DNA of 64,000 nt from Hemiscyllium ocellatum (GCF_020745735.1 NC_083433.1:19045363-19109362), one strand, 5' to 3'; positions 8,599-50,200 are shown, counted from the first letter of the stretch. Notes: generated from the sequence alone by a model not told the origin. Numbers and translations are program-made.

Positions 8599-9073
8599 GA
8601 GTGATATCAAGGGAAAAGGGGATGATTCAGGAAAACGGTGTCAAGCAGATCAGCCATGATCTCACTGAATGACAGGGTGAACTCGAGGAGCTGAATGGGC
8701 AATATTGCTTGTGTTCTTAGGCATCAAAGTGTGGCCCAGCCATTGACACTCACATCCCACGACAGAATTAAACTGACCATTGATTTCGATCTCCATAAAG
8801 GAGAACAGATACTTAAGTATCAATGTGATTCTCTTTATTTCACAATAAGAACACAGTCTATTCTACAGTTCTAATGACATTTCATGGCTTTACCTCCTTT
8901 AATATTAACCTAACCAGTATGTAACCAAAATATGTTTCTGAACATCTTTTAAAAAAAGATATAGATTAAAAATTCCTGGTTTAAGTGCTGTTAACTTTAC
9001 AAACTTCCTCAGATGACCCCCTTGTAAATGATATTGAAACAGCATGTTCACTGTTCCCATATGCTCACATTTC

Positions 9074-9079
9074 TTTATT
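9074..9079 (-). promoter_or_regulatory. Candidate polyadenylation signal (AATAAA) of gene A
   Basis: AATAAA on the minus strand ~520 nt downstream of the stop at 9594; another lies at ~8834-8839. Confidence 0.35.
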
Positions 9080-9593
9080 TTCAGACCAATTGTTTGTTTT
9101 TCTGCATTCTTTCATTTTCTCCACAACTGAAGGTGTTGATCATTCCTTGCGTAGAGTGATTGCACTAGATTTCCAGTTTACTGCTCCCAAAATTGTGGGT
9201 GACATTGCAGATGAGCCACCTGCCAAGGAAGGCACCCAAAATGGCAAGTAAAACATCTAACCCACCCACCTCCACCAGATAATGGGCACCAGATGATGCT
9301 AGGATGGGCCTCAGCCAAACAGCTGTGTTGTGGCACGCAGCAGATCCTCAAAAATTAATCTAATCCAAGGTTGGAGTCAAGTTTTGTTCTGACTGATACT
9401 GGTAATGTTGGAGTGACAATTAGCCGATTTCTTTCTCCCTCCCAAGTCCAGGAATACTGGGACCAGCCCTAATGTTTGTCCAAGCCTCACAAAGCACAGG
9501 CCAATGTCTGAAACACAAAGCTTTCCTTGACCTGAATGAGCATTGCACCACCAACATCAACACTTCCTCAACAAAAATCTGCTCAGCGTCATT

Positions 9594-9839
9594 CTAACCT
9601 CTTGCCAAGATAATGTTAAAACCTTTGAACAAAAAAAATGCAGTAAAACTGGTGAAATGCTTGCACTGCGTTCTGTTTTCAGTCACTTTGATGAACAGCT
9701 GGTTGGCAATGAGTTTTTTTTTAAACAGGGCTTCCTGCCGGACCTCTGCATACACCATCTGACATGCTGCACTACGCGTTCGATTTGTTGGAGATAGGTT
9801 CAGTGTAGTATAATGGATCTCTTCCTCCTCCAGATGATT
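9594..9839 (-). CDS. Gene A exon 5: terminal cytoplasmic exon with ITIM + ITIM-like motif
   Basis: Acceptor ttttatttttctacag|, phase 0: NHLEEEEIHYTTLNLSPTNRTRSAACQMVYAEVRQEALFKKKL...ILARG*. IxYxxL preceded by an acidic run, plus a second YxxV motif. The C-terminal part depends on an A9 homopolymer length. Confidence 0.8.
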   Translation of the reverse strand, partial: NHLEEEEIHYTTLNLSPTNRTRSAACQMVYAEVRQEALFKKKLIANQLFIKVTENRTQCKHFTSFTAFFLFKGFNIILARG

Positions 9840-10204
9840 CTGTAGAAAAATAAAATCTTATCATTCATCTTAACAGAGAAGGAAGAGGGAGCTGGGGCAA
9901 GTGGACACTGGCAGGAAGTTCCCCTTCTTTCCTTGCTGGTTTCTGACTTTCCGCTCACCCCACCACTTAAGAAGAAAGGCTCAGGCCTTTGAGGTGATTC
10001 CGCAGGGCACCAATGATTTCCCAAAATAAAGCATGTAAGTCCTGCCACTCTCCCTTCCTGGAACTATCAGGGTTGATATTCCTATTTATAATCAAATTTT
10101 TATGGTTATAGGTTAGGAGCATATTTATAAAAAAACTGAAATAGTTTTATTATTCTAAAGTCAAAGTACAAAAGCTAGACAATTCAACAATTCACTTCCT
10201 TCAA

Positions 10205-10930
10205 GCAAGTTGTCTATCTAGATATTTATTAATGACTTGGATGAGGAGGTTGAAGGATGGGTTAGCAAGTTTGCAGACGACACAAAAGTTGGAGGTGTCA
10301 TTGACAGTATAGAGGGCTGTTGTAGGCTGCAGCGGGACATTGACAGGATGCAGAGATGGGCTGAGAGGTGGCAGATGGAGTTCAACCTGGATAAATGCGA
10401 GGTGATGCATTTTGGAAGGTCGAATTTGAAAGCTGAGTACAGGATTAAGGATAGGATTCTTGGCAGTGTGGAGGAACAGAGGGATCTTGGTGTGTAGGTA
10501 CATAGATCTCTTAAAATGGCCACCCAAGTGGACAGGGTTGTTAAGAAAGCAAATGGTGTTTTGGCTTTCATTAACAGGGGGATTGAGTTTAAGAGTCGTG
10601 AGATCTTGTTGCAGCTCTATAAAAAAAACTTTGGTTAGACTGCACTTGGAATACTGATTCCAGTTCTGGTCGCCCTATTATAGGAAAGATGTGGATGCTG
10701 TTGGAGAGGGTTCAGAGGAGGTAATGAATCTGTGGAATTGACTGCCACAGAGGCCTAAGGAGGACAAGTCAATGATTGTCTTTAAGACAGGGATAGACAG
10801 ATTCTTGCTTAGTAAGGAGTTCAAGGGTTATGCTGAGAAGGCAGGAGATTTGGGTTGAGAAACATATCATGATCAATGGCAGAGCAGATTTGATGGGCCA
10901 AATAGCCTAATTCTGCTCTTATATCTTATG
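10205..10930 (+). mobile_element. CR1 3' fragment
   Basis: SKFADDTKVGG...WQMEFNLDKCEVMHFG. Confidence 0.85.
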
Positions 10931-11680
10931 GTCTTGTGGATTTACCAGGAATGTTAATCTCCATTCAGATAACTTTTCCTGTCATCTCTGTCAAGAAATT
11001 TTGATAAAATTCTGCCTGCAGAACTCATTTCAATAAAGCTAACCATGGCTTTAATTTAGTTTCTTGCCTGAGCTGGCTGTTTGACATGTCAATTTTATTG
11101 ATGACAGAAGACACTAAACATTTATAATGATAAATTGCTAACTAGCTGTTGTTCCAAGAGGAATGTAAAAAACATAATTATTAAGGCAGATATTATTGAC
11201 TAATTTGTTTCCATGAACTTGTCATGTACATATTAGAGGCTACATTGTTGTTAGATAGGCCAATGGACTAGATGTAAAGTGTAATCCATTAGGTATAAAG
11301 CAAGGTCATGTGGTGTGGTGTTCCCGTCTCTTAACCAGAATATCTGGGTTTGAGTCCCACTCCAAGATCTGAGGCCAAGTAACATTAGTTCATAATATGG
11401 CCAAAATGTTTGTCTATCATGCTGCCAATCCTTCCAACACACACCAATGGCAGGCAGAGTGGGAGAGATTCCTGGTCAGTTAAGAAATAAGAACATTATT
11501 GGAGTTTCTACCCACACTAACCATAGCTCCAAGCTATAAGATGTGTGTAAAAGTGTGCGTTACTGCATTATGGATGGACAATAACACACCACCTCCCAAC
11601 ATGAAAGTACCTTGCGACCCCCTGAGGATGTGGCAAGTGCTTTATAAACAGACTGATGCTGCAAGTCATCACTTCCTTAC

Positions 11681-11742
11681 CTCACTAGTAACTGCACTCC
11701 TATATGATGTCACCTGGTTCCTGGTCAATGCGAGAGCCCAAC
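11681..11742 (-). CDS. Gene A exon 4: short cytoplasmic exon
   Basis: Acceptor tattttaatctatcag|, donor GAG|gtaagg. 62 nt, converting phase 1 to 0 exactly as needed between the TM and ITIM exons. GWALALTRNQVTSYRSAVTSE. Confidence 0.65.
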
Positions 11743-23924: not shown

Positions 23925-24083
23925 CTTTCTTGAGCTGCAAGATGTACAGCACGGCCGCCAGTAGAAATAGGATGGAAATGACAGCCAACGCCAGGAAATA
24001 AACAGACCGAGGACCGAGGGATCCGCAGCTCTCGCACCTAAAGCCCTCAGTTGGAGGTGGGGAATTGCTGGCATCGTCCGGCC
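23925..24083 (-). CDS. Gene A exon 3: stalk + transmembrane segment
   Basis: Acceptor tttgaatttcag|, 159 nt, phase 1-1, donor AAG|gtgcat. Translation GPDDASNSPPPTEGFRCESCGSLGPRSVYFLALAVISILFLLAAVLYILQLKK: an uncharged hydrophobic helix followed by a basic stop-transfer. Confidence 0.8.
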
Positions 24084-24379
24084 CTGAAATTCAAACATAG
24101 TCATCAGAGATAGCCAAGGAGAGAACAATAGATCCGCTTCAGGATCCCCCTTCCCCCCCCCCCCCTCGCCCCCTTCGTCCCCCCCTCCCCCTTCGTCCCC
24201 CCTTCACCCCCCCCCTTCCCCCCGCCACCCCCTTTCGCAAAACTAAAACTAACAAATTTTCGCATCTGTTTATCTCTACCTTTTATGGACACGGAACAAA
24301 TGTTTTAAAATGCATTCAAACGGATTACATTTAGGGAAACGTGTTCCCGCCTGTCCTTCTGTCATTCTTCCTTTTGCAC

Positions 24380-24563
24380 AAAGTTAAAAATCACACAACA
24401 CCAGGTTATAGTCCAACAGGTTTAATTGGAAGCACACTAGCTTTCGGAGCGACGCTCCTTCCAAAAGCTTGTGCTTCCAATTAAACCTGTTGGACTATAA
24501 CCTGGTGTTGTGTGATTTTTAACTTTGTCCACCCCAGCCCAACATCGGCATCTCCAAATCATT
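24380..24563. mobile_element. PLE family-2 palindromic insertion, ~300 bp upstream of the TM exon
   Basis: Inverted pLTR pair; flanks share cttttgcac. Confidence 0.8.
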
Positions 24564-24594
24564 CTTTTGCACGAGGTAACTTAAATGAAACAAA

Positions 24595-25350
24595 GTCATA
24601 GAGACATACAGAATGGAAACAGACCCTTGATTCAACTTGTCCATGCCCACCAGATATCCTAAACAATCCTATTTGGTCCATGTCCCTCCAAGCCCTTCCT
24701 GTTCATATATCAATCCAGATGCCTTTTACGTGTTACAATTTTACCAGCCTCCATCACTTCCTCTGGTAGCTAATTCCATACATGCACCAAACTCTGCATG
24801 AAAATATTGCCCTTCTTGTCTTGGCTATTTACCCTATCTACACCCTTATGATTTTATAAACCTCTGTAAGGTCCCTCCTCAACTTTCAACATTCTGGGGA
24901 AAACAGCGTATTCAACCTCTTCCTATAGCTCAAACCCTCCAATTCTGGCAACATTCTTGTAAATCTTTTCTGAACCCTTTCAAGTTTCACAATATCCTTC
25001 CTATAGCAGAGAGACCAGAATAGAACGCAGTATTCCAAAAGTGACCAAACCAATGTACAGCCAAAACATGACCTCCCAATGCCTATACTTGATGCACTGA
25101 TCTATAAAGGTAAGCATACCAAATGACTTCTTCACCATCCTATTTACCTGTGACTCCACTTTCAAGGAGTTATGGACATTCATTCCAAGGTCTGTTTGTT
25201 CAGCAACACTCCCCAGTACCTTACCATTCAGTGTATAAGTCCTGCCCTGATATGCCTTTCCAAAATGCAGCATCTCACATTTATCTAAATTAAACTCCAT
25301 CTGCCATTCCTTGGCCCATCTGATCAAGGTCCTGTTGTACTCTGAGGTAA
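24595..25350 (-). mobile_element. CR1 3' fragment
   Basis: WQMEFNLDKCEMLHFG...KVESQV. Confidence 0.8.
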
Positions 25351-28300
25351 CCTCAGATGATGGTAAATATATAGTGAATCCAGTACATGAACAGTGAGAA
25401 TACATGTGATAACTTCTGTTAGAAAGTCCACAGAGCCTAACCCTAAAACTGAAGGGACTACCTAAGATTGTTAGCCTCTTTCTGCTACACTTGGCTCAGG
25501 TCCTGCTTTTGACATCTGCACAGCAGTCTGGACAATGTGAGATTGTGGAAATAATTCACACTTAAGGCAACAAGAAGCGTTTGTGTTGATGACATTCACA
25601 AACTTACCTTAAACGTCCTTAACATGACCATAACCATTACTTACTCTAACCTCATGTTATGTTTAACATAAGCTTACCGTGCACTTTAACCTTAGATTTA
25701 CTATAACCATATACTCCCTATAACCTTAACTATGCACTTATTTTAAACTTATCTTAAATTTACTGTAACCTTATCTTGAACTTGTTAAACCTTATATTTA
25801 CTACTATCCTGCCTTGCATTTAACAATAACTTTATCTTACATTTACTATAACCTTACACTTACTATAAGTTCACACCGTTCTTAAATAAATAACTTGTAG
25901 TTATTTTGCTCCTTTCCCACCATGAGTATATCAGAAGTCTTCACAGCACTTTGAATATGTTTTGGACTGTAGTCACTGTGGTACTGCAGGGAAAGAGATT
26001 GCTAAATTCTGAATGAAGACTGACAAATAGAAATTGGCTAAGAGATTGCATTGTGTGTTTTGGGTCATTTGGTTGGCGTAATACTGCCCAGAGGGGACTT
26101 TGCAAAGTTATTTCAGTTTCCGATTTCCAGCAGGAAATTGCAAGTCTAGAATTACAAAACTAGAATTACAAAGGTTGATTTGTTCTATATTCTCAGCTTT
26201 TGACTGATATGATCTCCACATTGGAAAAAAGTTAGTTTCTTTCTGCTGGTACATGTACAGGTTGTCCGTCTGATCTTGTAATCTGCTGGTGCGGTTTGAG
26301 GTATAGTATGTATGGGGAAAACAGACATATGAACAAAAGAGATAGCAACAAAAGGTCATTCAGCCCTTAAAGTTGCTGAGCTGTTCTCTTCCACTCTCTT
26401 CTATCAGACAGAAGATACAAAAGTTTAAAATTAAAAACAACAAATTTAAGAACAGCTTCTTCCCCACTGTTATCAGACTCATATATTAGAGTTGCTCTTT
26501 CTCTGCACCTTCTCTGTGACACTATTCTGCATTCTGTTCTGTTAGCCTGATGTACTTATGCAACGATGATTTGTCTGGTTAGCATGCAAAATAATACTTT
26601 TCATACATGTGGCAATAATGAATTAGATCAAATCAAAGGTCATGGCTGAGCATCTATCTCAATTCTATACTCCTACACTATTGCTATACTCCCTTAGTAC
26701 ATAAAACAAGTACCTCAATAACTGAGCATCTTAACCCTCTGTGGTAGAGAATGCCTTCAGGTGAAGAAATTTCTCCTTATTTCACATATTCACATATTCG
26801 TAGCTCTATACTTGCTAGGCAATGGAGGCATTCTCCCAGTAGCTACGCTCAAGCCCCTTAAAAATTTTGTTTCAATTAGAACACCTCTCATTGTTTGAAA
26901 GACGAGGGAATATCAGCTTAGTATTTTTGATCTTTCTTCCCAAAAATCAGAACAAGGAACATACATTGTGTTCCCTCAGAGACAAATTCTTAATTAAGGA
27001 GACCAAACTGTACATAGCATTCCAGATACAATAATACTAATATGTCATTATTCTCATGCTCCCATTTCAATGCAATAAATGCTAATACATCTAATTGTTC
27101 CAGCAAGTTAACTTTACAGGTCCTTTTGAATACCTGTATTTCCTAGTCTACTAACATTTGAGAAATATTATGCATCTCTAACCTTTCTACCAAAATAGAT
27201 AACATCACATTAAACATTATATTCCACATAGTTGCTCATCCATTTAACCTGTCTCAACATTTTGCTTTTTTTTTGCAGTTCCTCGTGGTTTACATTTCCA
27301 CCTAACTCTTTATTATTGATAGGCTTGAATGCATTATACTCGGTCCCCTCATATTATTCATTGACTTTGATTATCAATGGCTGAGACCCAGGTGCTGATC
27401 TTTGTCATTTTGTGCTACCCCGAAAATATCTTGTTTATTCCTACTGTCTGTTTTCTGACCATTAAAGCAATATTTAATCCATGCCTATATACAACTGCTA
27501 ATCCCGTGAGCCCAACGTTTATGAAGTAATTGTGTTTGTACATTTTTTGAATCTCCAAATATATTACACCCACTGTTTTCCTCTGATCTACTCTTACAAC
27601 CTGAAAAAGTGCTAACAGATGAATCAAACATGATTTGATCCCTATTATCATTTTTTCCTGTATCTCTCATGCTTACTGCTACTCTTTGTTTTTACTCAGC
27701 AATAGACCTTTACAAATCTGCTTTATGTTTCTTGATAGTTTCCTCCCAGATTCTCTCATCTCATAGAGTCCCTTCAGTGTGAAAGCAGACCATTCACTCC
27801 TTCAAGTCTACACTGACCCCGCTGGAGAGCATCCTTTCTAGCCTCCATGTCCCAACCTTATCCCTATAACTCTGTATTTCTTTTGGCTAGTCCATCTAAC
27901 TGACACATCCCCGGACACTATGGGCAATTTAGCATGGCCAATCCATCTAACCTGCGCATCTTTGGACTATGGAAGGAAACTGGAATACCTGGAGGAAACC
28001 CAAGCAGATATGGGGAGAATGTACAAGTTCCACACAGGCAGTCGCCCGAGGGTGGAATTGAACCCGAGTCTCTGATGCTGTGAGGTATCATGCTGATTAC
28101 TGAGCCAATTGCTACCCAGTTGAACTCAGTCATTTGTTGCTCACCTTTTACTGAATTCCAAAATTCTCCAAGTGCTCAGGTTTGCTTCTCTTTTCTTTTT
28201 CCACATCACAATAAGCTCCATTTTTTAATGTAATGCTACCGTAAAATTGCTTTGTTAACCATAGCTGGGTGACCATGTCTGTTGGGGTGTTTAATCCTTG

Positions 28301-28989
28301 AGAGTATACTTGTTGAAATTTATAAAATTATTTTGCCAACATCCACTGCATATTTACACTTAGTATCACATTAATTTATTTAATTCAGATTTCCAATGAA
28401 CTTAGCCAACTTTTCCCTTATAGTGGCATAGTTTGCTTGGTTCAGATTTTAATATCAGTTGGAATGAAACCATTCTCAAAATATATATTCTTAAGCTATG
28501 TATTCTTAAACTATGAGGAGCGTGTGGTATAGTGATAATGTCACTGGGCCACTAATGTAGAAATCCCGCTGTTCGAATGCTGCCTGACCTGCTGTGCTTT
28601 TCCAGCAACACACTTTTGACTCTGATCTGCAGCGTCTGCAGACCTGACTTTATCTTAATGTTTAGGGGAATTGAGTTTGAATTCTGCCATGGTAGATGGT
28701 TAAAATTTGACTCCATTGAAAAAGCTGGTTTAATGCCAACTGTGTAACCACTGTCAGTTGTCGTAAGAACCCATTCAGTTCACTAATGCCCTTTAGGAAG
28801 GAAACTTTCCATCCTAATCTGGTTTGGCCTTCATGTGCCTCCAGACCCACAGCACTGGAGATGATTTTTAATTGCCTTCTAGGCAATTACATTAGATTAG
28901 ATTAGATTCCCTATGGGCAGTAAATGCTAACTTAGCCAACAATGTCCATGTCCCGTGAACAAATAATATTTGGGGGAGCATGGTGGTAG

Positions 28990-29297
28990 TGGGCGGTGTG
29001 GTGGCACAGTGGTTAGCACTGCTGCCTCACAGCGCCAGAGACCCAGGTTCAATTCCCGCCTCAGGTGACTCTCTGTGTGGAGTTTGCACATTCTCGCCGT
29101 GTCTGCGTGGGTTTCCGCTGGGTGCTCCGGTTCCTCCCACAATCCAAACATGTGAATTGGCCATGCTAAATTGCCCGTAGTGTTTGGTGAAGAGGTAAAT
29201 GTAGGAGTATGGGTCTGGGTGGTATACGCTTCGGCGGGTCGGTGTGGACTTGTTGAGCCGAAGGGCCTGTTTCCACACTGTAAGTAATCTAATCTAA
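28990..29297 (+). mobile_element. tRNA-derived shark SINE (HE1-like)
   Basis: gtggcacagtggttagcact (A box), ggttcaattcccgcc (B box), CR1-like tail ending gtaatctaatctaa. Confidence 0.85.
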
Positions 29298-30709
29298 AAA
29301 TTATCATTTTATTATCATTCTTCCACAAACGTTATTCATATTAATTCAGTTTTTAAATTGTATATAAAATAAAAAAAAACCTGTTCCCAAGGTGATTCCT
29401 CAATATCTAGAAGATTTAGATAATTTAGAAAACTGCAAAAATGAATCACCTTTACAATATTACTGCAATTTGGTTTGCACAGCTAAATGAAGATTTAAAT
29501 CCCCAATAACTACCATATTGAACTTGTTACATAGTTTCCTGATTTATAGTCTGCCTAACACGACTGCAAATCTTAGTGCTTTTTTAAGATGCACTAAGCA
29601 ACAAGCTGAAATAAAATATGTATTGAGAAAAAACAACATTGTGAACCTGCAGCAACTTACGCTATTCATGGGCAAAATGATAGAGCGCAGAGGTATTTGC
29701 GCCCTACCTAGTACAAAGAATATTTACAGCAAATATTTATGAAGTCTATATTCCTCTACTATCAATGTTTTCTGTACATTTTTGTAGCTCCATCCAAATT
29801 AATTAATAAAGTTTTTCAATTTTAAGAGCTAATGTTCTTTCTCTCTATGGTTTTTATCCCATTCCTTTATTATCATGGTTACACTTCTCCTTTTTGCTTT
29901 ACCAATCTCTTCTAGAAGTCAAGTGTTTTTATCCCATCCCTTTATAATCAAGATTTCTCTTTCCTTTTTGGTTAACTAATCTCTTCTCGAAGTCAAGAGT
30001 ATTGTAACATTTATTTCCCAACATTGGTCACTGTGCGACTCCCATCTTTTATTAAATCAAGCTCATTAAATTCTAGCTGTGCTGCTCATGTTATCTGTTT
30101 CACCATGAATATGTTGTGCCTTCAGATATAGAGCTGCTTGCTTTAACCTTTTTTGGGTTTTTTTTCTGATTTCACATTCATCAGTAAAATCTTATACTCT
30201 TTAATTGGTTTGGCAAAAGCAACAGATGAATGAATGGATCAACGCAAGCGTTCATCTAACAGGACATTAAAAAAGATCACTAAGTTCATCAGATATTGTC
30301 CTGGTAGTCTCATAGTACACTGATACAGAATGTTGAATTGCCATCTTTCAACCAAATCTCAGTCATATATATATAGTATGCCTAAATGCCAATCTGTATT
30401 CAGCTTGTTTATCTTATTCCTCGTGCTCCTTATATTAAAATATATTCCATTCAGAGTCATAAACTCTCTACAGTGAAGAAAGAGGCCATTCGGCGCATTG
30501 AGTCTATACCAACCCTTCAAAGAGTATCCCACACAGACCCAACCCTGCACTACCATGGTTAATCCACCTAAACCTGCACAACTTTGGACTGTGGCAGAAA
30601 ATTGGAGCACCCAGAGGAAACCCACGCAGAGATAGCGAGAATGTGAAAACTCCACGCAAGCAGTCAGCCAAGGCTGCAATCACACCTGGTCCCCGTACCA
30701 CCAAATCTA

Positions 30710-31829
30710 TGATTTGGAGATGCCAGTTTATAGTCCAACAGGTTTAATTGGAAGCACTAGCTTTCGGAGCGCTGCTCCTTTATCAGGTCATTGTGAAGTA
30801 CACAATTGTAAGACACAATTTATAGCAAACGTTTACAGTGTGATGTAACTGAAATTATACATTGAAAATTACCTTGATGGTTTGGTAAGTTTCTCATCTG
30901 TTAGAATTATCATGTTAGTTTTACTTCTTTCATATGTAAAGCACAAAACATTTTTAAAAAGTTACATTCTCAGGTTAACTTTAACAATTGGTATCAGCCC
31001 AGATAATCTGTTGAAGGTGTTAGCCCCCGGTGTGCTGTTGTCTGTGCCATAATGTTTAGACTGATTCTAATCTAAAAAATGAGCTCACACACACACATAC
31101 ACAGACACACACTCCCACACTCATACATGCACCCTCTCACAGACTTAGACCACTTTACACTCACACATACACTTATACACTCTCTCTCACAGAAACTCAC
31201 ACACACACTCCGACAGACGCACACACTCCGACACTCACACAAGCACCCTCTCACAGACTTAGACCCCTTTACACTCACACACGCGCGCACACACACACGT
31301 ATACACGCTCTTCTCACAGACACACACAATCCCCCCCACCACCACCACAGACAGACACACGTACACATATACGTTTGTGGGGTGGCTTTGTACTTGCGGA
31401 GTTACATTGTACTTTGTTCAAAAACTGTATGAATCCATGTAAGACTCTGTTAACTCATTTTTTAGATTAGAATCAGTCTAAACATTATGGCACAGACAAC
31501 AGCATACCGGGAGCTAACATCTTCAACAGATTATCTGGGCTGATACCAGTTGTTGAAAGTTAACTTGAAAATTTTAATTTTACAAAAAGGTTTTGTGATT
31601 TACATATAAAAGAAGAGAAACTAACATGGTCATTCTAACAGATGAGGGACTTACCAAACAATCAAGGTATTTTTCAATGTATAATTTCAGTTACATCACA
31701 CTGTAAACTTCTGCTATAAATTGTGTACTCCACCACCACCTGATGAAGGAGCAGCGCTCCGAAAGCTAGTGCTTCCAATTAAACCTGTTGGACTATAACC
31801 TGGTGTTGTATGATTTTTAACTTTGTCCC
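30710..31829. mobile_element. PLE family-2 3' end with inverted copy and CA-rich internal region
   Basis: Arms ~30710-31080 and ~31430-31829 are inverted; TSD ccaaatcta (30701-30709 / 31830-31838). Confidence 0.85.
31737..31771 (+). ncRNA. Minimal hammerhead ribozyme (PLE family 2)
   Basis: CAC-CUGAUGA-A-GGAGC AGC GCUCC-GAAAGC-UA^GUG: stem I CAC:GUG, palindromic AGCU stem III. Confidence 0.75.
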
Positions 31830-32266
31830 CCAAATCTAGCCTTGGTAAACTCACTTCTTTCTTACCAAGCCTGTGTTTTCTTTGTCTTCCAGACTCACTC
31901 ACTTGCATTTTAACTTCTAATTCCATCTCAGCTGCTCTCCCCTCTGAAATACTTGCCAAGATTCCATCAGCCTGTCAATCCAGTTCAAATTCATCCAACA
32001 GCATTTGTAAACCTCCCCATGAGATGATTACTCCTGTTCCTGGTCAGCTGTAACCTGTCCAGTTCAAACTGGACCCCCAACCCCTAGAAATAGTCCCAAT
32101 ATTTTTTTAATTTCAAAAATAAACTTTATTAATTAAAAAAATCTTTATATCCATACATAGTCACTAGACCAGTTTGGTTTTGTACAGTCTTTGCATATGG
32201 AGAGCAAGCAAACATTGGAGTTTGACATTCCCGACAGTTTCAACAAACCTAAGGCATTTCTTACTT

Positions 32267-32481
32267 AGGAGAAAGTGAGGACTGCAGATGCTGGAGATCA
32301 GAGCTGAAAATGTGTTGCTGGAAAAGCGCAGCAGGTCAGGCAGCATCCAAGGAACAGGAGATTCGACGTTTCGGGCATAAGCCCTTCTTCAGGAAGAAGA
32401 AGGGCTTATGCCCGAAACGTTGAATCTTCTGTTCCTTGGATGCTGCCTGACCTGCTGCGCTTTTCCAGCAACACATTTTCA
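32267..32481. mobile_element. PLE family-1 palindromic insertion
   Basis: 13-bp TSD gcatttcttactt (32254-32266 / 32482-32494). Confidence 0.88.
32361..32396 (-). ncRNA. Minimal hammerhead ribozyme (PLE family 1)
   Basis: UUC-CUGAAGA-A-GGGC UUAU GCCC-GAAAC-GUC^GAA: intact core and stems. Confidence 0.75.
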
Positions 32482-32687
32482 GCATTTCTTACTTATGCAA
32501 GATTCTTTTTGCATATATTTCAGGGTCCAATAACTGAACGGACCCCTATTGTACTTTGGCTGAAAGAGCTTAGATGGTGGTCTTTCCATACCTAAGGCCC
32601 CCTGTCACCCACTCCTTTCAATGATGCTGACTGCCTGTCACGGAGTCTTCACCTTCCCTGGTCCTCTCAATTGTTGACTAATCGTGA

Positions 32688-33015
32688 CACAATGGCTCAG
32701 TGGTTAGCACTGCTGCCTCACAGCGCCAGGGACCCAGGTTCGATTCCAGCCTCGGGTGACTGTCGATGTGGAGTTTGCACATTCTCCCTGTGTCTGTGTG
32801 GGTTTCCTCTTGGTGCTCCAGTTTCCTACCACAGTCCAAAGATGTGCAAGTTCGGTGGATTGGATATGCAAAATTGCGCATAGTTTCCAAGGATGTGCAG
32901 TCTAGATGGACTAGCCATGGGAAGTATAGGGCGGTGGGTCTGAGTGGGCTGGTTTTTGGAGGGTCAGTGTGGACGTAATAGGCAAAATGGCCTGCTTCTC
33001 TACTGTAGAGATTCT
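32688..33015 (+). mobile_element. tRNA-derived SINE
   Basis: Same head, variant tail. Confidence 0.8.
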
Positions 33016-34852
33016 ATGCAAGGTAAATATGTGTGGTCGAGAGATTTGGGAAAGTTAAACGCTTTTCTTTCTCCTCTCATTGTCATGTTCCAATTTACTT
33101 GGTTCCTAAAATGCTATTTTCTGAAAGACGGCTGTGACATTCCTATTGAAGTGAATCAATACAAACTCTCAATTATTTCCTAAGGGAATCAGTTCCTTGG
33201 ATTGGCCACTGAAAGAGTAATGGTCCTGATATTTATGGGTAGTTCTCAAGAGATGCTGGAAATAGTCAAGGAATATAGTCATTGACCCACAGACTTTGCC
33301 TAATTTAACAGCAGGAGCTCATTCTAATTTCTTTTTCCTGTTTGCCACTTGGCAGCGGGCAAATGATCTGGCCGCCAGGCAGGAGGTTGTGATCCTTGAC
33401 TATTTTAATGAGGGGGTTTAGTGGCTTTAAGCTTGAGGCTTAAAGAACAAGGAGAGAGAAAATTGTGAGAGAGCAAGAGGAGAGAAGATCAGTGCTTGAG
33501 ATGGAGGGCGGTTGGGGGGGGGGGGGGGGGGAGGCGGTGGTGAGTGGGTGCACAGAGAGACAAATACAAATGTGGGAAAGGAGGAAAAGGCCAGCGATCG
33601 GTGTTTGGGTGAGGCAAGGTTGGTTTTGCCTGTGATATGGAAAAAACGTTGACATTTGTTGAGTTGGGGGTGATTCTACATTGTAAGAGAAGCTACGAAT
33701 GGCTACTGGAGGAGGAACGAAGGAGTCAGTAGAATCACTTGTATTTCTCCATCAGAAAAGGAGCTCTGAAAAAAATATCACATTGCTCCTTGAGTCGACA
33801 ACTGCTCATTACCTTTTGCTGCCAGCTTTCTCAAGATCTGAGGAGACTATACAGGGTTGAATTTAAACTTGGTTTCTAATTGAATAATGAGAACCCATGT
33901 TAATGAAATATTTTATCTATCCATGTTGGAACACTTTTGGGAGATAGAATCTATTACCATGAAAATAGTGGCAGTGCACATGTGGTGGTTGTGATCATAT
34001 TCCCAATTTTGTTATTTCCTTAATGCCTTAATCTTTTCTTCCCCACTGTGAGAAGGCAGCAGACGGATTAATATCGAGGTCAATATTGATTAATTTCAAA
34101 TTAATCTCCCTTCCTGTCCTCTCCCTCTCCCAGTCCTCCTTCCTTTTCATTCCTGATAAAAGGTTTCTGCCTGAAACATCGATTCTCCTGCTCTTCTGGT
34201 GCTGCCTGACCTGCTGTGCTTTTCCAGTGCCACAATTTTCGACTGTGATCTCCAGCATCTGCAGTCCTCAGTTTCTCATTAATCCAGAGACCCAGGTAAT
34301 GTTCTGGTGTTCCGAGTTCAAATCCTACCAGGCAGATGGTGGAATTAAGAGTCTAATGATGTCGATTGCCAGGGAAAACCCCATCTGGTTCACTAATGAG
34401 CTTTAGGGAAGAAAACTTGTCTGGTCTGGGCCTACATGAGACTCCAGATCCACGTGGTTGACTGTTAACAGCCCTCTGGGATGAGCTGTAAATACTAACC
34501 TAGCTCGTGATATCCTCACCCTGTGAATGAATGAAAAAAAACCCTGTCTTTCTTAAATGGCAGTGACACCAGAGCAATAGAGTCAAAACGTGTGGTGCTA
34601 GAAAAGCACAGAAAGCATAAGCTCTTCAACGTCGACTTTCCTACTCCTCAGATGCTGCCTGACCTGCTGTGATTTTCCTGCACCACACCATTTGACCCTG
34701 ACTCTCCAACGTCTGTAGTCCTGACTTTCTCATACAGGTTGTGATTAGCCAAAGGTACGTACAAGTGGGTAAAAACAGATACATGGAATTATGTCGCAGA
34801 CCAAACATGCATCAGTTAAATGGTGGGGCAATCTCAAAGGGTTTTTTGTTTT

Positions 34853-35158
34853 TAGATTACTTACAGTGTGGAAACAGGCCCTTCGGCCCAACAAGTCCAC
34901 ACCGACCCGTCGAAGCACAACCCACCCATACCCCTACATTTACCCCTTACCTAACACTACGGGCAATTTAGCATGGCCAATTCACCTGACCTGCACATCT
35001 TTGGACTGTGGGAGGAAACCGGAGCACCCGGAGGAAACCCGCGCAAACACGGGCAGAAGGTACAAACTCCACACAGTCTGTCGCCTGAGTCGGGAATTGA
35101 ACCCGGGTCTCAGGTGCTGTGAGACAGCAGTGCTAACCACTGTGCCACCGTGCCGCCC
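34853..35158 (-). mobile_element. tRNA-derived SINE
   Basis: Near-consensus copy on the minus strand. Confidence 0.85.
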
Positions 35159-36451
35159 ACAATTTGATTGCCAAGTTAAATAGTGAATTCCTGCTGGTGT
35201 ATTATTAATAGCTTAATCTACTTAGAGTCATACAGCACAGAAACAGACCATTCGGTCCAACTCATCTAGATATTCTAAATTAACAGACCCTTCGGTCCAA
35301 CTCATCTAGATATTCTAAATTAATCAGACCAGATATTCTAAATTAATCTAGTCCCATTTGCCAGCCCTTGGCCCATACCCTTCTAAACCCTTCCTATTCA
35401 GATACCCATCCAGATGCCTTTTAAATGTTGTAATTGTACCAGCCTCCACTATCACCTTTGATAAGTCATTCCATACATGCACCACCCTTTGCATAAAAAA
35501 GTCACCCCTTAGGTCCCTTGTAAATCTTTCCCCTCTCACCCTAAACTCCAGTTCTGGACTCTCCCACCCCAGGGAGAAGACCTTGTTTACTTAACCTATC
35601 CATGCTCCACATGATTTGAAGGGTACATTTATGGAATTTTGTACCTGTCTACTCAAGACAAGTTTGCTTTTCTGCTTCTTGTAAAATTGCCTCCTTTTTT
35701 TCCATTTTTTCTGATTCCTATTATCCTTTCCCATAAAGACAAGCATTATTAATCAAAATTAAATTAGTGGAGGGGCTGTTCGATGAACAAAGAATCAAAC
35801 TTGAATTAGAAGTAAAAAAAATGTGGAACTTTCTCAAATTATTTCGTCGTTAGCCAAGTCAAACTTGCCCTCCAGTCTGATGGTTGTGGAAAGTTTAAAG
35901 TTTGCCAACGGACATCACGTTCTCCTTCTCTAGGGACGCCAGAGTTAGATATAGCTGCTAAGGAATGGAGGGTAGTTGGAACTGTTAGTCCTTTTGATTG
36001 TATGCTGCCTGGACCAAGCTATCAAGCTGAGGTGTAGACCCTTGTGGAAGTCCTCTGACTTAGCCTCTCTCTTCCTCTGTACCAGATGCAGAAACTAGGA
36101 GCATGGGGCTGTAACCCAGCTAGTAAAGCAGTGAAAAACCCTTCTTATTCTGATTGTTGAAACGCATTACTACACAGACGTTTGTATCAAACAGTATTTT
36201 CCACCAATCTGCCAGCTACAGTTCTGCATTTTCACAATCTTCTTCATAGCATATATTAATTCTAAATTGATATCGGCAGCAAATTCAGATAATATCCATT
36301 CAACTTGCAAGTCTAGATGTATGAAATAAGAGCACCAGGGAATTGGGAGCATCATGTATCTTTAACAGTCTTAAACATTTCTGTTTATCCTTGTCTTTGT
36401 TTTTTGCTCTCCAACCACTTCTCTATTTATGTCGGCCCTAGTTTCTATGTG

Positions 36452-36665
36452 TTGCTGGAAAAGCTCAGCAGGTCAGGCAGCTTCCAAGGAGCAGGAGAGT
36501 CAACGTTTGGGGCATGAGCCCTTCTTCAGGAATCCCTTTCTGAAGAAGGGCTCATGCCCGAAACGTCGACGCTCCTGCTCCTTGGATGCTGCCTGACCTG
36601 CTGCGTTTTTCTAGCGACACATTTTCGGCTCTGATCTCCAGCATCTGCAGTCCTCACTTTCTCCC
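36452..36665. mobile_element. PLE family-1 palindromic insertion, ~130 bp downstream of the gene A V exon
   Basis: 12-bp TSD agtttctatgtg (36440-36451 / 36666-36677). Confidence 0.85.
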
Positions 36666-36794
36666 AGTTTCTATGTGCCGTTATCTTGTCCCTGAGTGAC
36701 CTGTCCAGTATCCTATGAAATATTGCATTTTCACATTTGGAATGCCCGTATTTATTTTATCATGGTTTTGCTTTCCTTGAAATAAATTACTTAC

Positions 36795-37150
36795 CCGTCA
36801 GGATCAACTTGGTCCCGTTTCTTAAGGCTAAGACCCCAAATTGCCAGTCCATGCAGAAATAAAGGCCGGCATCAGATGCATTGACACTTTCTATTGTTAA
36901 GTTGAAGAATCCAGAGAGACACGAATGGATGCTGTGGTCGGCAAATATTTGGGACGGAAGACATGCTTTGAGTTGAAAAAGGAATAGACCAGAATCACTG
37001 GAGTTTGTCCTTCCTGCTGCTTCAGCCAGTATGAGTAGGTTTGGTCAATGAAGGACTGGGTCTTTATGAAACACATGAGGGTCACATTATCTCCCAGCCT
37101 AACAGAGCGGGATTCAGCTGTCTGCAAGACCAGGTGACGACCTTGAACAT
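36795..37150 (-). CDS. Gene A exon 2: germline-joined V-J Ig domain (NITR/TCR-like), 1-nt frameshift near 36905 (pseudogene allele or assembly error)
   Basis: Acceptor ttcattccctccag|, donor g|gtaagt. DNVTLMC...YSYWLKQQEGQTP...RVSLDS, then in the shifted frame FNLTIESVNASDAGLYFCMDWQFGVLALRNGTKLILT. Canonical V-set Cys, Trp and D-x-G-x-Y-x-C are present. The exon is 356 nt, one short of the 357 needed for phase 1-1. Confidence 0.9.
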
Positions 37151-38601
37151 CTGGAGGGAATGAAAGCAGAAACATGACAGTAACAGGGGGTAACGTAAAA
37201 TTTCCTCCATTTGCAACAGCACGTTTAGACCTTAAAGAGCAGAAGTATGCCCTTCAGCCCATTGAATCTGATTCAATGAGAACATGGTTGATCTGATAAA
37301 CCTCAACTTCATTTTCCTGTCTTCATCCTTACTCCCTTACTGATTAAACATCTAGCTCAGCCTTGAATAGACTAAACAACGCAGGGTCAACAGCCCTCTG
37401 TGGCAAAGAATTCTATAGATTCAATACCTTCAGACCAGAAACTCTAAACATCTGTCTCTTAAATGTGTGACTCCTTATTTTGAGAGGTTTTTAATAAATT
37501 TCCTTGATTCTGAAACACTGTGGAATGTCCTAAAGTCCTGAAAAGGGCATATATTATCCAATTTCCTTCCCAAGAATTTGACCACGATTATAGAACTCAT
37601 AATCCTAATTAGGATTAAAAGCAAATGCTGGAGATCCTAGTTGTGAAAAAAAGGTTGAGACTGTTCTGAACAAGAGTCATTACTGGACTCAAAATTATAA
37701 CTCTTGTTTTTCTCTCTCCACAGATGTTGCCAGATTTGCTGAATTTCTCCAGTACTGACTGTCTTTATATAAGTTACAATTACTTTTGTTCAACAATTGG
37801 AAAGGATTACACATACTTAAACCCATTTGGAAACATTATCATCACAGCTTCTGTTGATGTACACTCGCAGCTTGAGACCTGGTGATGCAGTGGCAGTATC
37901 CCTACTCTGGTCTAGGAGATCTGGGTTCAAGACCCACCTGCTTTAGAGATAGAATCATAAAGTTGTACAGCACAGAAACAGAAGCTTCAGTCCAAGTCAT
38001 CCTTACTGATCAGATATCCTGAATTGATCTAGTCAAATTTGCTAATATTTAGTCCATATCCCTCTATTCATGTACCCATCCAAATGCTTTTAAAGTTGTA
38101 CTTTTACCAGCCTCCACTACTTCTTCTGGCAGCTCATTCCACACACACACCACCCTCTGTGTGAAAAAACTGCCCCTTTTAAATCTTTTCCCTTTCACCG
38201 TAAATCTCTAGTTTTGGACTTCCCTACCCTGGGGAAAAGATCCTTGCTATTCACCCTATCTATGCCCCTCATGACATTATGAGCCCCATTAGGGTCCCCT
38301 CTGTCAGCGTCTGAAAGCTCCAGGGGAAATAGTATCAGCCTATTCAGCTTCTCCCTGTAGCTCAAACTGTTCAAATCCAGACATCGCTGAACACATTGAT
38401 TAGAAAATACCTGAATGCAGGAACCAAATGTAATGGCAATCATAATCAGATCTCCACTCCTACATTTAGAAGGGCGCATGTGGCACTGTGGTAGTGTCTG
38501 TGCCTTTGAGCCAGGAGACGCAGCATTAAAGTCCCACCTGTCCCAGTGATGTGTCATAAAGAACCTGAAGAAAGTTGATTAAAAAATATCTAAAAACTTA
38601 C

Positions 38602-38638
38602 AGCTGTGTAGGAGAATAGGGATTAGCAAACGCCACAT
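38602..38638 (-). CDS. Gene A exon 1: signal-peptide (leader) exon of a V-type Ig-superfamily receptor
   Basis: ATG TGG CGT TTG CTA ATC CCT ATT CTC CTA CAC AGC T|gtaagt = MWRLLIPILLHS + 1 nt (37 nt, phase 1, perfect donor). Joins in frame to the V exon (T+AT = Tyr: ...LLHSYVQGRHLV). Confidence 0.8.
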
Positions 38639-47254: not shown

Positions 47255-50200
47255 TAGAGTCATAGAGATGTACTGCACAGAAACAGATCCTTCGGTCCAA
47301 CTCGTCCATGCTGACCAGATATCTCAACCCAATCTAGTCTTACCTGCCAGCACCTAGCCCATATCCCTCCAAACCCTTCCTAATCATATACCCATCTAAA
47401 TGCCTCTTAAATGTTGCAACTGTAGCAGCCTCCACCACTTCCTCTGGCAGCTCATTCCATACATGTACCACCCTCTGTGTGAAAAGGTTCCCCCTTAGGT
47501 TTCTTTTATATCTTTCCCTTCTCACCCTAAACCTATGCCCTCAAGTTCTGGACTCCCCGACCCCAGGGAATAGACTTTGTCTATTTATCTTATCCATGCC
47601 TCTCATGATTTTATAAACCTCTATAAGAACATCCCTCAGCCTCCGACGCTCCAGGGAAAACAGCCCCAGCATGTTCAACCTCTCTCTATAGCTCAAATCC
47701 TTCAACCCTGGCAACATCCTTGTAAATCTTTTCTGAACCCTTTCAAGTTTCGCAACATCTTTCCGATAGGAAGGAGACCAGAATTGCACACAATATTCCA
47801 ACAATGGCCTAACCAATGTCCTGTACAGCCGCAACATGACCTCCCAACTCCTGTACTCAATACTCTGACCAATAAAGGAAAGCATACTAAACACCTTCTT
47901 CACTATCCTATCTACCTGCGACTCCACTTTCAAGGAACTATGAACCTGCACTCCAAGGTCTCTGTTCAGCAACACTCCTAGGACCTTTACCATTAAGTGT
48001 TTAAGTCCTGCTAAGATTTGCTTTCCCAAAATGCAGCACCTCGCATTTATTTAAATTAAACTCCATCTGTCACTCCTCAGCTCATTGGCCCATCTGATCA
48101 AGGTCCCGTTGTAATCTGAGGTAACCTCCTTCGCTCTCCACTACACCTGCAATTTTGGTGTCATCTGCAAACTTACTAACTCTACCTCTTATGCTCACAT
48201 CAAAATCATTAATATAAATGATGAAAAGTAGTGGACCCAGCACTGATCCCTGTGGCACTCCACTGGTCACAGGCCTCCAATCTGAAAAACAACCCTCCAC
48301 CACCACCTTCTGTCTTCTACCTTTGAGCCAGTTCTGTATCCAAATGGTGAGTCCTCCCTGTGTTGCATGAGATCTAACCTTACTTACCAGTCTCCCATGG
48401 GGAACCTTGTCGAACGCCTTACTGAAGTCCATATAGATCACGTCTACCGCTCTGCCCTCATCAATCCTCTTTGTTACTTCAAAAAATTCAATCAAGTTTG
48501 TGAGACATGGCTTCCCACGCACAAAGCCACGTTGACTATCCCTAATCAGTCCTTAACAATCCACATGTAAATCCAATCCCTCAGGATTCCCTCCAACAAC
48601 TTGTCCACCACCCACGTCAGGCTCACTGGTCTATAGTTCCCTGGCTTGTCCTTACCACCTTTCTTTAATAGTGGCATCACGTTAGCCGACCTGTAGTCTT
48701 CCGGCACCTCACCTGTGACTATCGATGATACAACTATCTCGCAAGGGGCCCAGCAATCACATCCTTAGCTTCCCACAGAGTTCTAGGGTACACCTGGTCG
48801 GGTCCTGGGGATTTATCCATTTCTATACATTTCAAAGTTAAAAATCACACAACACCAGGTTATAGTCCAACAGGTTTAATTGGAAGCACACTAGCTTTCA
48901 GAGCACCGCTTCTTCATCAGGTGGTAGTGGAGGGCTCAATCCTAACACAGAATTTATAGCAAAAATTTACAGTGTGATGTAACTGAAATTATATATTGAA
49001 AAATTGATTGTCTGTTAAGTCTTTCATGCTTGAATACCATGACAGTTTCACTTCTTTTGTGTGTAAATCACAAAACCTTTTTTTAAAAAAAGTTGCATTC
49101 TCGGGTTAGCTGTTAACAATGGTGGTAGCTAGACAATATGTTGAAGGTGTTGGCCCCCTGTGTTCTCTGTCTATGCCATGATGTTTAGATTGATTCTAAT
49201 CTAAAATGTGAGATAACAGAGTTTTACATAAATTCATGAAGTTTTTGAGCAAAGTACAATGTAACCCTGCAAGTACAAATTCACCCCACAAAATATATGT
49301 GCATGTGGGTCTTTGTCTGTGTGTGTGTGTCTGTCTGTCTGTCTGTCTGGGTTGGGGGTTGTGAGTGTGAGAAAGTGTATGTGTGTGTGTGTAGTGAGTG
49401 CAGAGTGTCTTAAGTCTGTGAGGGGGTGCATGTGTGAGTGTGGGAGTGTGTGCGTCTGTAAGGGTGTGTGTGGGTGTCTGTATGCATGTCTGTGTGTATG
49501 TGTGTATAGGAGTGCCTGTGTGTGTGAGAGTGTGTGTGTGTGTATAATGCAATGGTGGTTACCTGTAATATGACATGAACCCAAGGTCCTGGTTGAGGCC
49601 CTCCCAATGGGTACCAAACTTAGCTATCAGCCTCTGCTTGGCCACTTTTAACCATAGGGAGGGCCTCAACCGGAACCTTGCGTTCACGACTCATTACAGG
49701 TAACCACCATTGCATTATGCACACACACACTCTCACACACACACAGGCACTCCTATACATACATACACACGGACACACATACACACAGACACGCGCACAG
49801 ACACCCACACACACCCTTACAGACACACACACTCCCAGCCTCACAAATGCACCCCCTCACAGACTTAAGACACTCTGCACTCACTACACACACACATACA
49901 TTTTCTCACACCCACAAACCCCACCCCAGACAGACACACACACACAGACGGACAAAGACCCACATGCACACATATATTTTGTGGGGTGAATTTGTACTTG
50001 CAGGGTTACATTGTACTTTGCTCAAAAACTGCATGCATTCATGTAGAACCCTGAGCTCAAAAAATTAATGAATTCATGTAAAACTCCGTTATCTTACTTT
50101 TTAGATCAGAATCAATCTAAACATCATGGCATAGACAGAGAACACAGGGGGCTAACACTTTCAACATATTGTCTAGCTATCACCATTGTTAACAGCTAAC

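Follow-up and report, generated by a model that had tools for sequence, protein, structure and literature searches.

Gene structure at the locus

The window analysed here, a 64,000-nucleotide stretch of DNA from Hemiscyllium ocellatum, carries on its minus strand five exons of a gene for a receptor with a single antibody-like V domain. Checked base by base, the exons are present with the lengths, splice sites and phases (1, 1, 1 and 0) that a preliminary description of the locus had given them. The exons, the features within them and one further V-J exon on the opposite strand are as follows (a slash marks an exon boundary).

38602-38638, minus strand: exon 1, 37 nt (ATG...T/gtaagt), start codon and signal-peptide leader (MWRLLIPILLHS plus 1 nt)
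36795-37150, minus strand: exon 2, 356 nt (cag/...G/gtaagt), V-set domain and J-like G strand in one exon
36897-36911, minus strand: break site, a 7-nt deletion directly after GAT (36911-36909), with a frameshift leading to an in-frame TAA at 36899-36897
36796-36822, minus strand: degenerate J-like strand RNGTKLILT, in which the FG of the orthologues' FGNGTKLxLTG has become LR
23925-24083, minus strand: exon 3, 159 nt (cag/.../gtgcat), Pro/Ser-rich stalk and uncharged transmembrane (TM) helix
24036-24025, minus strand: stalk C-x-x-C, within exon 3
24003-23938, minus strand: uncharged TM helix VYFLALAVISILFLLAAVLYIL, within exon 3
11681-11742, minus strand: exon 4, 62 nt (cag/.../gtaagg), cytoplasmic (GWALALTRNQVTSYRSAVTSE)
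9594-9839, minus strand: exon 5, 246 nt (acag/...TAG), cytoplasmic tail
9818-9801, minus strand: ITIM IHYTTL, in exon 5
9758-9741, minus strand: ITIM-like motif MVYAEV, in exon 5
9725-9723, minus strand: codon TTT, occupying the orthologues' stop position
Ending at TAG 9596-9594, minus strand: 43-aa read-through after the lost stop, in exon 5
59950-60288, plus strand: second V-J exon, intact

When the break in exon 2 is bridged, the spliced product is 286 aa long and contains the features attributed to it earlier, namely a V-set domain (Pfam matches of 4.4e-7 and 1.5e-3 for the two V pieces), an uncharged TM, and the IHYTTL and MVYAEV motifs at a spacing of 20 residues. The introns reach 12-13 kb, are rich in repeats, and one of them contains another gene. 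The preliminary description had also proposed that the V domain is the only Ig domain, and this stands: a comparison of 115 proteins, including the I domains of novel immune-type receptors (NITRs), with all stop-free segments of at least 25 aa revealed no second Ig exon between V and TM, scans by regex and by profile recovered neither C-type nor I-type Ig exons in any part of the window, and the orthologues described below also lack a second Ig domain.

The second V-J exon shares about 31-36% identity with the first and groups with a TCR alpha V domain in the V-domain tree; a word-seeded search of proteins of 88-280 aa returned no matches to it. As C-type and I-type Ig exons are absent from the window, a germline-joined Ig light-chain cluster within it is argued against for either V exon.

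Orthologues in sharks and rays

The whole layout of the gene product, in the order leader, V domain with in-exon J strand (FGNGTKL), cysteine stalk, uncharged TM, ITIM and ITIM-like motif, is common to predicted proteins of Heptranchias, Mobula and Hemitrygon, and a Mustelus model matches it up to the TM only. These orthologues are computational gene models, which NCBI names "T-cell surface glycoprotein CD8 beta chain-like" or "uncharacterized protein", and the three full-length ones align with the window product from the leader through MVYAEVRQ. In an exhaustive HMMER search of 1.84 billion proteins, the best matches to the V piece were those of Mustelus (54% identity) and Mobula (44%), to which a word-seeded search added the Hemitrygon and Heptranchias proteins. 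One gene per species was recovered in these four species, and a profile search with the four orthologues yielded only two salmonid NITR-like proteins and no further member from elasmobranchs. The V-domain tree puts the window sequence inside a clade with the four elasmobranch proteins, supported at 99/99. The J strand of the orthologues reads FGNGT[KTR]LxL[TA]G with the splice donor directly after it and no recombination signal (NGTKLILTG/gtaagt in the window), their CDR3 region is CAGWRxGxLxFGNGT, and an orthologue's AlphaFold model shows a TM helix and a V domain at pLDDT >90.

The relationship extends to the DNA. The locus of Heptranchias perlo is collinear with the window at 70-82% identity, every exon forming a conserved block, and this bears out the earlier claim of a cartilaginous-fish gene. 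The Heptranchias exons measure 37/363/168/62/117 nt, against 37/356/159/62/246 nt in the window; exon 1 has the same length and an aligned sequence, and exon 4 is identical in length with aligned flanks and an initial GW/GR common to the orthologues. Matches of the exon pieces to the Heptranchias orthologue have E values of 1e-24 and 4e-13 for the V pieces, 1.4e-11 for the TM exon and 2e-7 for the last exon. A Myb/SANT gene is nested in the TM-to-tail intron at both loci, and this shared gene together with the matching exon structure identifies the two loci as orthologous. A tblastx comparison of the 9.6 kb downstream with the Heptranchias flank found no neighbouring coding exon there, only conserved non-coding blocks and repeats.

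The five exons are thus a real shark gene for an antibody-like, single-domain inhibitory receptor common to sharks and rays, and the comparison supports what had been proposed of it earlier: a type I receptor whose one V-J domain does not rearrange, whose TM is uncharged and whose tail bears an ITIM and an ITIM-like motif. Public databases already list intact orthologues as predicted proteins; in the literature searched for shark receptors of the NITR-like or V-J ITIM type, no description of the family was found.

Lesions and status of the window copy

The gene had been regarded as complete once one base is restored, but relative to the Heptranchias orthologue the defect is a 7-nt deletion. 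The V exon reads CTGGAT followed by a seven-position gap and TCTTCAACTTAACA in the window, against CTGGATGACCAGAGTTTAAATTTAACG in Heptranchias, and the gap is one contiguous 7 nt in non-repetitive sequence outside any homopolymer. Exon 2, at 356 nt, is 7 nt shorter than its 363-nt orthologous exon, and the protein alignment has LDxQSLNLTIE at the break site in 4/4 orthologues. The stop codon has also been lost (CTG TTT AAA in the window vs CTG TGA in Heptranchias), and the last 43 residues of the roughly 286-aa protein proposed earlier are read-through into what is 3'UTR in Heptranchias. The J-like G-T-K-L strand reported previously does lie within the V exon, but it is degenerate, reading LRNGTKLILTG where all four orthologues have FGNGT.

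At 72 sites invariant in the other four sequences the window copy has 19 unique changes, compared with 0-7 in the others, and its V terminal branch in the V-domain tree is 0.55 long vs 0.13 and 0.26. Pairwise dN/dS is 0.39 overall and 0.31 for the V-J part, in a codon-level comparison made with Heptranchias only. The other four exons contain no second disabling lesion, and none of the protein searches returned an intact protein from this genome. The window copy is probably a pseudogene, and its loss of function is considered recent because the other exons and the splice sites have stayed intact and pairwise dN/dS remains low.

It is unlikely, though worth some weight, that the gene is instead functional here, the frameshift being a private allele or arising from misassembly and the extra 43 C-terminal residues being a lineage-specific feature that is tolerated. 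None of the ten splice signals is damaged, and neither are the start codon, TM, ITIM or ITIM-like motif; the dN/dS against Heptranchias points the same way, and with a single frame-breaking lesion a functional allele may exist. A 7-nt gap in non-repetitive sequence is, however, unlike a typical consensus error, and it coincides with loss of the conserved stop and of the J-motif FG; the changes that only this copy has at sites invariant in the rest, its terminal branch, which is 2-4 times as long as in the relatives, and the missing intact protein among the search matches from this genome likewise argue for inactivation.

Relationship to NITRs

Outside the elasmobranchs, the best sequence matches of the family are ray-finned-fish NITRs, for the V domain and the tail alike, and the next-best are proteins combining a V domain with an I domain of six cysteines, among them entries named NITR 12 or NITR 3a. 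Against a profile of the family, NITR V and I domains reach 50-65 bits. With a profile of the cytoplasmic part, 12 NITR tails score at least 8 bits, compared with 0/2500 shuffled tails, a match that is not specific since many unrelated inhibitory receptors also have tails with an ITIM and an ITIM-like motif. In the V-domain tree the family falls on the NITR side of the split with a support of 51/78, and a clade of the family with Ig/TCR V domains is not rejected by the AU test (p 0.30), so that the tree cannot separate NITR from Ig/TCR kinship and "NITR-like" denotes resemblance only.

The organization of the family likewise has features in common with NITRs and features that set it apart. Both are type I membrane proteins with a germline-joined V-J (FGxGTxL) in one exon and an ITIM followed some 20-26 residues on by an ITIM-like VY[AS]xV near the C-terminus; activating NITR forms are marked by a charged TM residue, and the TM of the family is uncharged. 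The six-cysteine I domain, regarded as the feature distinguishing NITRs from Ig and TCR (10.1101/2021.06.11.448072), is absent from the elasmobranch family, in which V-J leads straight to the stalk and TM, and one copy was found per species, in contrast to the large, fast-diversifying cluster of NITRs. Some teleosts are reported to carry V-only NITR genes, and for this reason the missing I domain is not an absolute exclusion from the NITRs. Evidence for NITR homologues in cartilaginous fish was reported to be lacking in a 2021 holostean study (10.1101/2021.06.11.448072). The earlier designation of the gene as an NITR-like receptor is therefore retained as to its closest matches beyond the elasmobranchs and qualified by the absent I domain, the single copy per species, the tree support and the AU result.

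Judged by sequence comparison, the family appears closest to ray-finned-fish NITRs and its layout resembles that of a V-only inhibitory NITR. A stronger reading, put forward tentatively as a possibility that falls short of being the probable one, is that the elasmobranch family is the cartilaginous-fish counterpart of the NITRs, a single-copy, V-only inhibitory receptor with germline-joined V-J that was already present in the jawed-vertebrate ancestor.

Comparison with other single-V receptors

The family might alternatively comprise CD8 beta paralogues that acquired an inhibitory tail and are not related to NITRs, a proposal we consider rather improbable. Signal peptide, single V domain with J-like G strand, cysteine stalk and TM give it the same layout as CD8 beta, and CD8 beta provides the best whole-chain Foldseek matches of the orthologue model among reviewed proteins (E 1e-12, residues 1-192, 23-26% identity). 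Among named clusters of the ESM Atlas, the closest is "CD8 beta chain-like", which may be the protein's own cluster. The family tail of about 58 aa, with ITIM and ITIM-like motif in all full-length orthologues, is unlike the short tail of CD8 beta, and CD8 beta is less similar than Ig kappa, TCR and NITR V domains (27-37% identity). Among those named or inspected of the 94 proteins with E<1e-3 in the exhaustive V-domain search there was no CD8-named protein from outside the family, full-length searches returned none either, and no CD8A-like exon was found in the window or the Heptranchias locus. The CD8-beta name given to the family by NCBI appears to reflect overall shape only and is probably misleading.

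It is very improbable that the gene belongs with the single-V co-receptors of the CD28/PD-1 group, such as checkpoint genes of the PD-1-like or CD28H-like type. Like PD-1, the family has a single V, a stalk cysteine, a TM and an inhibitory tail in which an ITIM precedes a second tyrosine motif, a PDCD1 cluster ranks with the nearer ones in the ESM Atlas (0.94), and many CD28-family genes occur in chondrichthyans (PMC11599192). Recognition of CD28/PD-1 genes relies on a CDR3 with MYPPPY, EIP or PPP, or on a PD-1 ITIM with a TxYxxV/I ITSM and pdcd1 synteny markers; chondrichthyan PD-1 candidates lack ITIM-related motifs, and CD28HL3, with its ITIM/ITSM, was not found in Chondrichthyes (PMC11599192). 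The CDR3 loop of the elasmobranch family is without the proline motifs of CD28, CTLA4, CD28H and CD28X, its second motif MVYAEV is not an ITSM of the form TxYxxV/I, it differs from PD-1 and the CD28 family in having a complete J-like strand, and the top matches of the sequence and Foldseek searches include no protein that its name or sequence would mark as PD-1 or CD28.

NKp30 (NCR3) is likewise a non-rearranging VJ-type receptor with a single V, known from sharks to mammals, and an NCR3-like cluster is among the nearer ESM Atlas clusters. Its TM contains a charged residue and its signalling runs through ITAM adaptors, in contrast to the uncharged TM and ITIM tail of the elasmobranch family, and NKp30 is absent from the Foldseek top lists. 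PDB sequence and fold searches returned generic Ig/TCR V domains, with catfish NITR10/11, NKp30 and PD-1 not among the top matches, and Foldseek against AlphaFold clusters gave only unnamed Ig-like proteins.

The suggestion that the exons stem from different transcripts or are chance open frames among repeats, prompted by the long, repeat-rich introns and the gene inside one of them, has practically no likelihood. Gene models of three species independently connect these five exons, whose lengths and phases are conserved, and every exon is a collinear block with Heptranchias; the comparison of orthologues effectively refutes the suggestion, including the case raised earlier in which the TM and ITIM exons belong to a different transcript.

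Proposed receptor and implications

Taken together, the data make it likely that the window holds the shark orthologue of a single-copy inhibitory V-J receptor gene that is conserved in sharks and rays and closest to NITRs in sequence, and that this copy was recently inactivated. The intact receptor would be a type I membrane protein of about 246 aa that begins with a signal peptide, followed by one Ig V domain that shares its exon with the J-like G strand FGNGTKLxLTG, such that no rearrangement would be needed. A short stalk with conserved cysteines, probably linking a disulfide-bonded dimer, would lead to an uncharged TM helix and a tail with an ITIM (EIHYAS/TxL) and, 20 residues later, MVYAEVRQ near the C-terminus. 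If the analogy with NITRs and other inhibitory IgSF receptors holds, a ligand bound by the V domain may cause phosphorylation of the two tyrosine motifs, recruitment of SHP-1/SHP-2-type phosphatases and thereby damped activation of the receptor-bearing lymphocyte or NK-like cell. That the expressing cell is of NK type, as the preliminary description had it, is pure conjecture.

The value of the locus lies in the family, the window copy being a recently broken member. Germline-joined V-J receptors bear on the origin of the rearranging antigen receptors, and NITRs are their textbook example; a conserved gene of sharks and rays, with NITRs as the best match for its V-J domain and for its ITIM tail, makes the question of cartilaginous-fish NITRs directly testable. 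If the family is indeed the NITR counterpart, the intact second V-J exon, at a distance of 21 kb, would be a hint of a small cluster at this locus, and NITR-type receptors would be older than the divergence of cartilaginous from bony fish and not an innovation within the ray-finned fish.

A conserved germline V-J gene for a predicted inhibitory receptor

The five minus-strand exons of the receptor all lie exactly where the preliminary description placed them, and their phases (1, 1, 1, 0) agree.

38638-38602, minus strand: exon 1, 37 nt, ATG ... T/gtaagt
37150-36795, minus strand: exon 2, 356 nt, ccag/AT ... ACGG/gtaagt
24083-23925, minus strand: exon 3, 159 nt, tcag/ ... AAAG/gtgcat
11742-11681, minus strand: exon 4, 62 nt, tcag/ ... 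GAG/gtaagg
9839-9594, minus strand: exon 5, 246 nt, acag/ ... TAG

Once the break in exon 2 is bridged, the spliced product is 286 aa long. Both halves of exon 2 match the Pfam V-set domain, and the closest solved structures to the window V domain are Ig light-chain and TCR V domains. The TM segment VYFLALAVISILFLLAAVLYIL is uncharged, and the tyrosines of the tail motifs IHYTTL and MVYAEV are 20 residues apart. As first reported, there is no second Ig exon between V and TM, and the I domain is absent from the window and from all orthologues.

The first 83 residues of the V exon, run exhaustively by HMMER against 1.84 billion representative proteins, returned as closest matches the single-V proteins XP_078094559.1 of Mustelus asterias (54% identity to the query) and XP_062919395.1 of Mobula hypostoma (44%), and a second protein search added those of Hemitrygon akajei and Heptranchias perlo. 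Three full-length orthologues (246-256 aa) can be aligned to the window product from the leader through the C-terminal motif. The family alignment contains VQC at the leader end, RLGDTVTL-C, YW-(K/R)QQ, SLNLTI, SDAG-Y-CAGW and FGNGTKL-LTG, followed by a Pro/Ser stalk with cysteines and the TM; G(W/R) opens the 62-nt exon, and the tail carries EIHYAS--(L/F)SP, then C-MVYAEVRQD-L, then the stop. The Heptranchias protein mapped onto its locus (L001) gives exons of 37, 363, 168, 62 and 117 nt, so that the leader and 62-nt exons are equal in length in the two species. Collinear blastn blocks connect the window and L001 at the V exon, the 62-nt exon, the last exon with its 3'UTR, and the exons of a same-strand gene nested in the TM-to-tail intron.

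Window about 18431-22867, minus strand: Myb/SANT-like DNA-binding gene in the TM-to-tail intron (Pfam Myb_DNA-bind_5, 1.3e-10)
L001 18652-22183: its Heptranchias counterpart

The nested gene includes the GC-rich stretch at 18-20 kb of the window. As it is also nested in Heptranchias, and in Mustelus begins right after the end of the receptor model, the nesting is older than the divergence of these sharks; it is not among the called genes at the Mobula and Hemitrygon loci. XP_078094559.1 resembles the family in its leader, V-J, stalk and start of the TM, and then continues into a Gly-rich repetitive tail. Since this model ends before the Myb gene, the true Mustelus ITIM exons probably lie beyond that gene and were missed by annotation. 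The window and Heptranchias receptor loci are orthologous, and the window DNA is that of a shark. An origin of the exons from different transcripts is very improbable given the orthologue alignment, exon lengths and collinear blocks, and the receptor is a real, conserved gene.

Probable inactivation of the Hemiscyllium copy

Compared with Heptranchias, the window V exon is short by exactly 7 nt, and DNA alignment of the two places a single 7-nt gap directly after GAT (36911-36909), in non-homopolymer sequence. The deletion cuts into the conserved LD-QSLNLTIE, and the shifted frame then meets a TAA at 36899-36897; restoring one base, as initially proposed, understates the lesion. The orthologue stop, three residues past EVRQ, is also lost, with CTG TGA in Heptranchias reading CTG TTT AAA in the window, and translation would continue through 43 codons of sequence that in Heptranchias belongs to the conserved 3'UTR. 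The native length would thus be about 245 aa rather than the ~286 aa originally predicted, the rest being stop-loss read-through.

When each family sequence is compared with the residues on which the other four agree (for the window, four spanning the shark-ray split), the window copy deviates at 19 of 72 invariant positions, against 0-7 for the others. Its changes at conserved sites include C16G, A115M and G116D. The J-like strand described in the V exon is intact in the orthologues, but the window motif is altered (F124L/G125R). In the V-domain tree the window terminal branch is 0.55, compared with 0.13 and 0.26 in the other sharks. The splice sites, all intact, the other four exons, likewise intact, and a pairwise dN/dS of 0.39 against Heptranchias point the other way. 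Taken together, the window copy is probably a recent pseudogene, and it is unlikely that the frameshift is an allele or an assembly error. In the genome as assembled, the receptor protein cannot be made.

Likeness to NITRs and other receptor families

Outside the elasmobranchs, both protein searches match best to proteins of eels, gars, bowfin, salmonids and carp, two of them named NITR 12 and NITR 3a (novel immune-type receptors of ray-finned fish). In these proteins the V domain is followed by a second domain whose cysteines show the pattern of NITR I domains, and the TM leads on to an ITIM and an ITIM-like motif. NITR V and I domains score 50-65 bits against the family V-J profile. When only the 58-aa cytoplasmic part is profiled, twelve NITR tails reach at least 8 bits, with 0 of 2500 shuffled tails above 7.6 bits, and gar and teleost NITR tails, (M/L)(N/H)YAAL..(F/L)S...VY(A/S).(V)R, are collinear with the family EIHYAS..LSP...MVYAEVRQ. 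Because the cassette of ITIM plus ITIM-like motif is widespread among inhibitory IgSF receptors, the tail match is given limited weight.

A maximum-likelihood tree built from 74 V-type domains unites the window V domain and its four orthologues in a 99/99 clade. The split that puts this clade with the NITRs, apart from the V domains of Ig light chains, heavy chains and TCR alpha, has weak support (51/78), and a grouping of the family with Ig/TCR is not rejected by an AU test (p 0.30). The family has no I domain, which a study of holostean NITRs takes as the feature setting NITRs apart from Ig and TCR; that study also records V-only forms in teleosts and reports a lack of evidence for cartilaginous-fish homologues (10.1101/2021.06.11.448072). 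No more than one family gene per species was recovered in the protein searches. The NITR-like reading of the preliminary description is therefore kept for function, where working like a V-only inhibitory NITR is a well-supported analogy, and is withheld for membership, given the missing I domain, the single gene per species and the equivocal tree. That the family is the cartilaginous-fish NITR counterpart is possible but doubtful.

Three of the four elasmobranch orthologues carry the NCBI name "T-cell surface glycoprotein CD8 beta chain-like". In an AlphaFold model of the Heptranchias protein, pLDDT exceeds 90 in the V domain, the TM is helical and the tail is disordered. Among reviewed proteins, Foldseek ranks CD8 beta chains best for the whole chain (23-26% identity), with Ig kappa and TCR V regions closer for the V domain alone (27-36%); in the PDB fold ranking, mouse CD8 alpha/beta come 22nd and 49th, after antibodies and TCRs. 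No CD8-named protein besides family members occurs among the matches named or inspected, and the CD8 beta tail is unlike the family tail. The name mirrors overall shape only. Placement of the receptor among the CD28/PD-1 proteins is unlikely because its CDR3 lacks a proline motif, its second tyrosine motif does not qualify as an ITSM, published chondrichthyan PD-1 candidates are without ITIM-related motifs, and CD28HL3 was not found in Chondrichthyes (PMC11599192).

Neighbouring sequence

59950-60288, plus strand: second intact germline-joined V-J exon, acag/AT ... ACAG/gtaaga (Pfam V-set 4.6e-16)
58792-58831, plus strand: its candidate leader, 40 nt, MNSLQWVTLMWLN, T/gtaagt, 1.1 kb upstream
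8815-9138, 1205-1497 and 508-885: collinear non-coding blocks downstream of the receptor, 68-82% identical to the Heptranchias flank
31070-31430 and 49200-50070, both strands: long imperfect CA/TG-rich low-complexity tracts with spurious Cys/Val-rich or His/Thr-rich ORFs

The second V-J exon lies 21 kb upstream of the receptor start on the opposite strand, with C23, W41, YYC and a perfect J motif, FGTGTMLTVTG. Its identity to the receptor V domain is about 31-36%, and its partner in the tree is the V domain of a frog TCR alpha chain (90/84); a word-seeded protein search found no relatives, and the exons that follow it must be situated past the end of the window. The next downstream gene in Mobula and Hemitrygon is convergent and encodes a protein of at least about 310 aa with V-set plus C2-set_2/C2-set_3 domains; no such gene was detected in the 9.6 kb downstream of the receptor in the window or in the 10-kb Heptranchias flank. 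The downstream collinear blocks hold no conserved open frame; conserved regulatory or 3'UTR elements are one possible source, and old repeats common to both loci another. Much of the intron and intergenic DNA of the window is made up of LINE reverse-transcriptase fragments and tRNA-derived SINE-like pieces.

Implications for the receptor family

Intact orthologues are already public as unstudied predictions under a misleading name, and literature searches turned up no account of the family, which belongs to a known class, the inhibitory germline V-J IgSF receptors. Its members have type I topology, an uncharged TM, conserved stalk cysteines and two conserved tyrosine motifs at a spacing typical of tandem-SH2 phosphatase docking sites, and the orthologue V domain retains an intact G-strand J motif. 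Such a receptor would form a disulfide-linked dimer and bind ligand through the CDR-like loops of its V domain. Src-family kinases would then phosphorylate the tail tyrosines, whose motifs would recruit SHP-1/SHP-2 and thereby inhibit an activating pathway in a lymphoid or NK-like cell.
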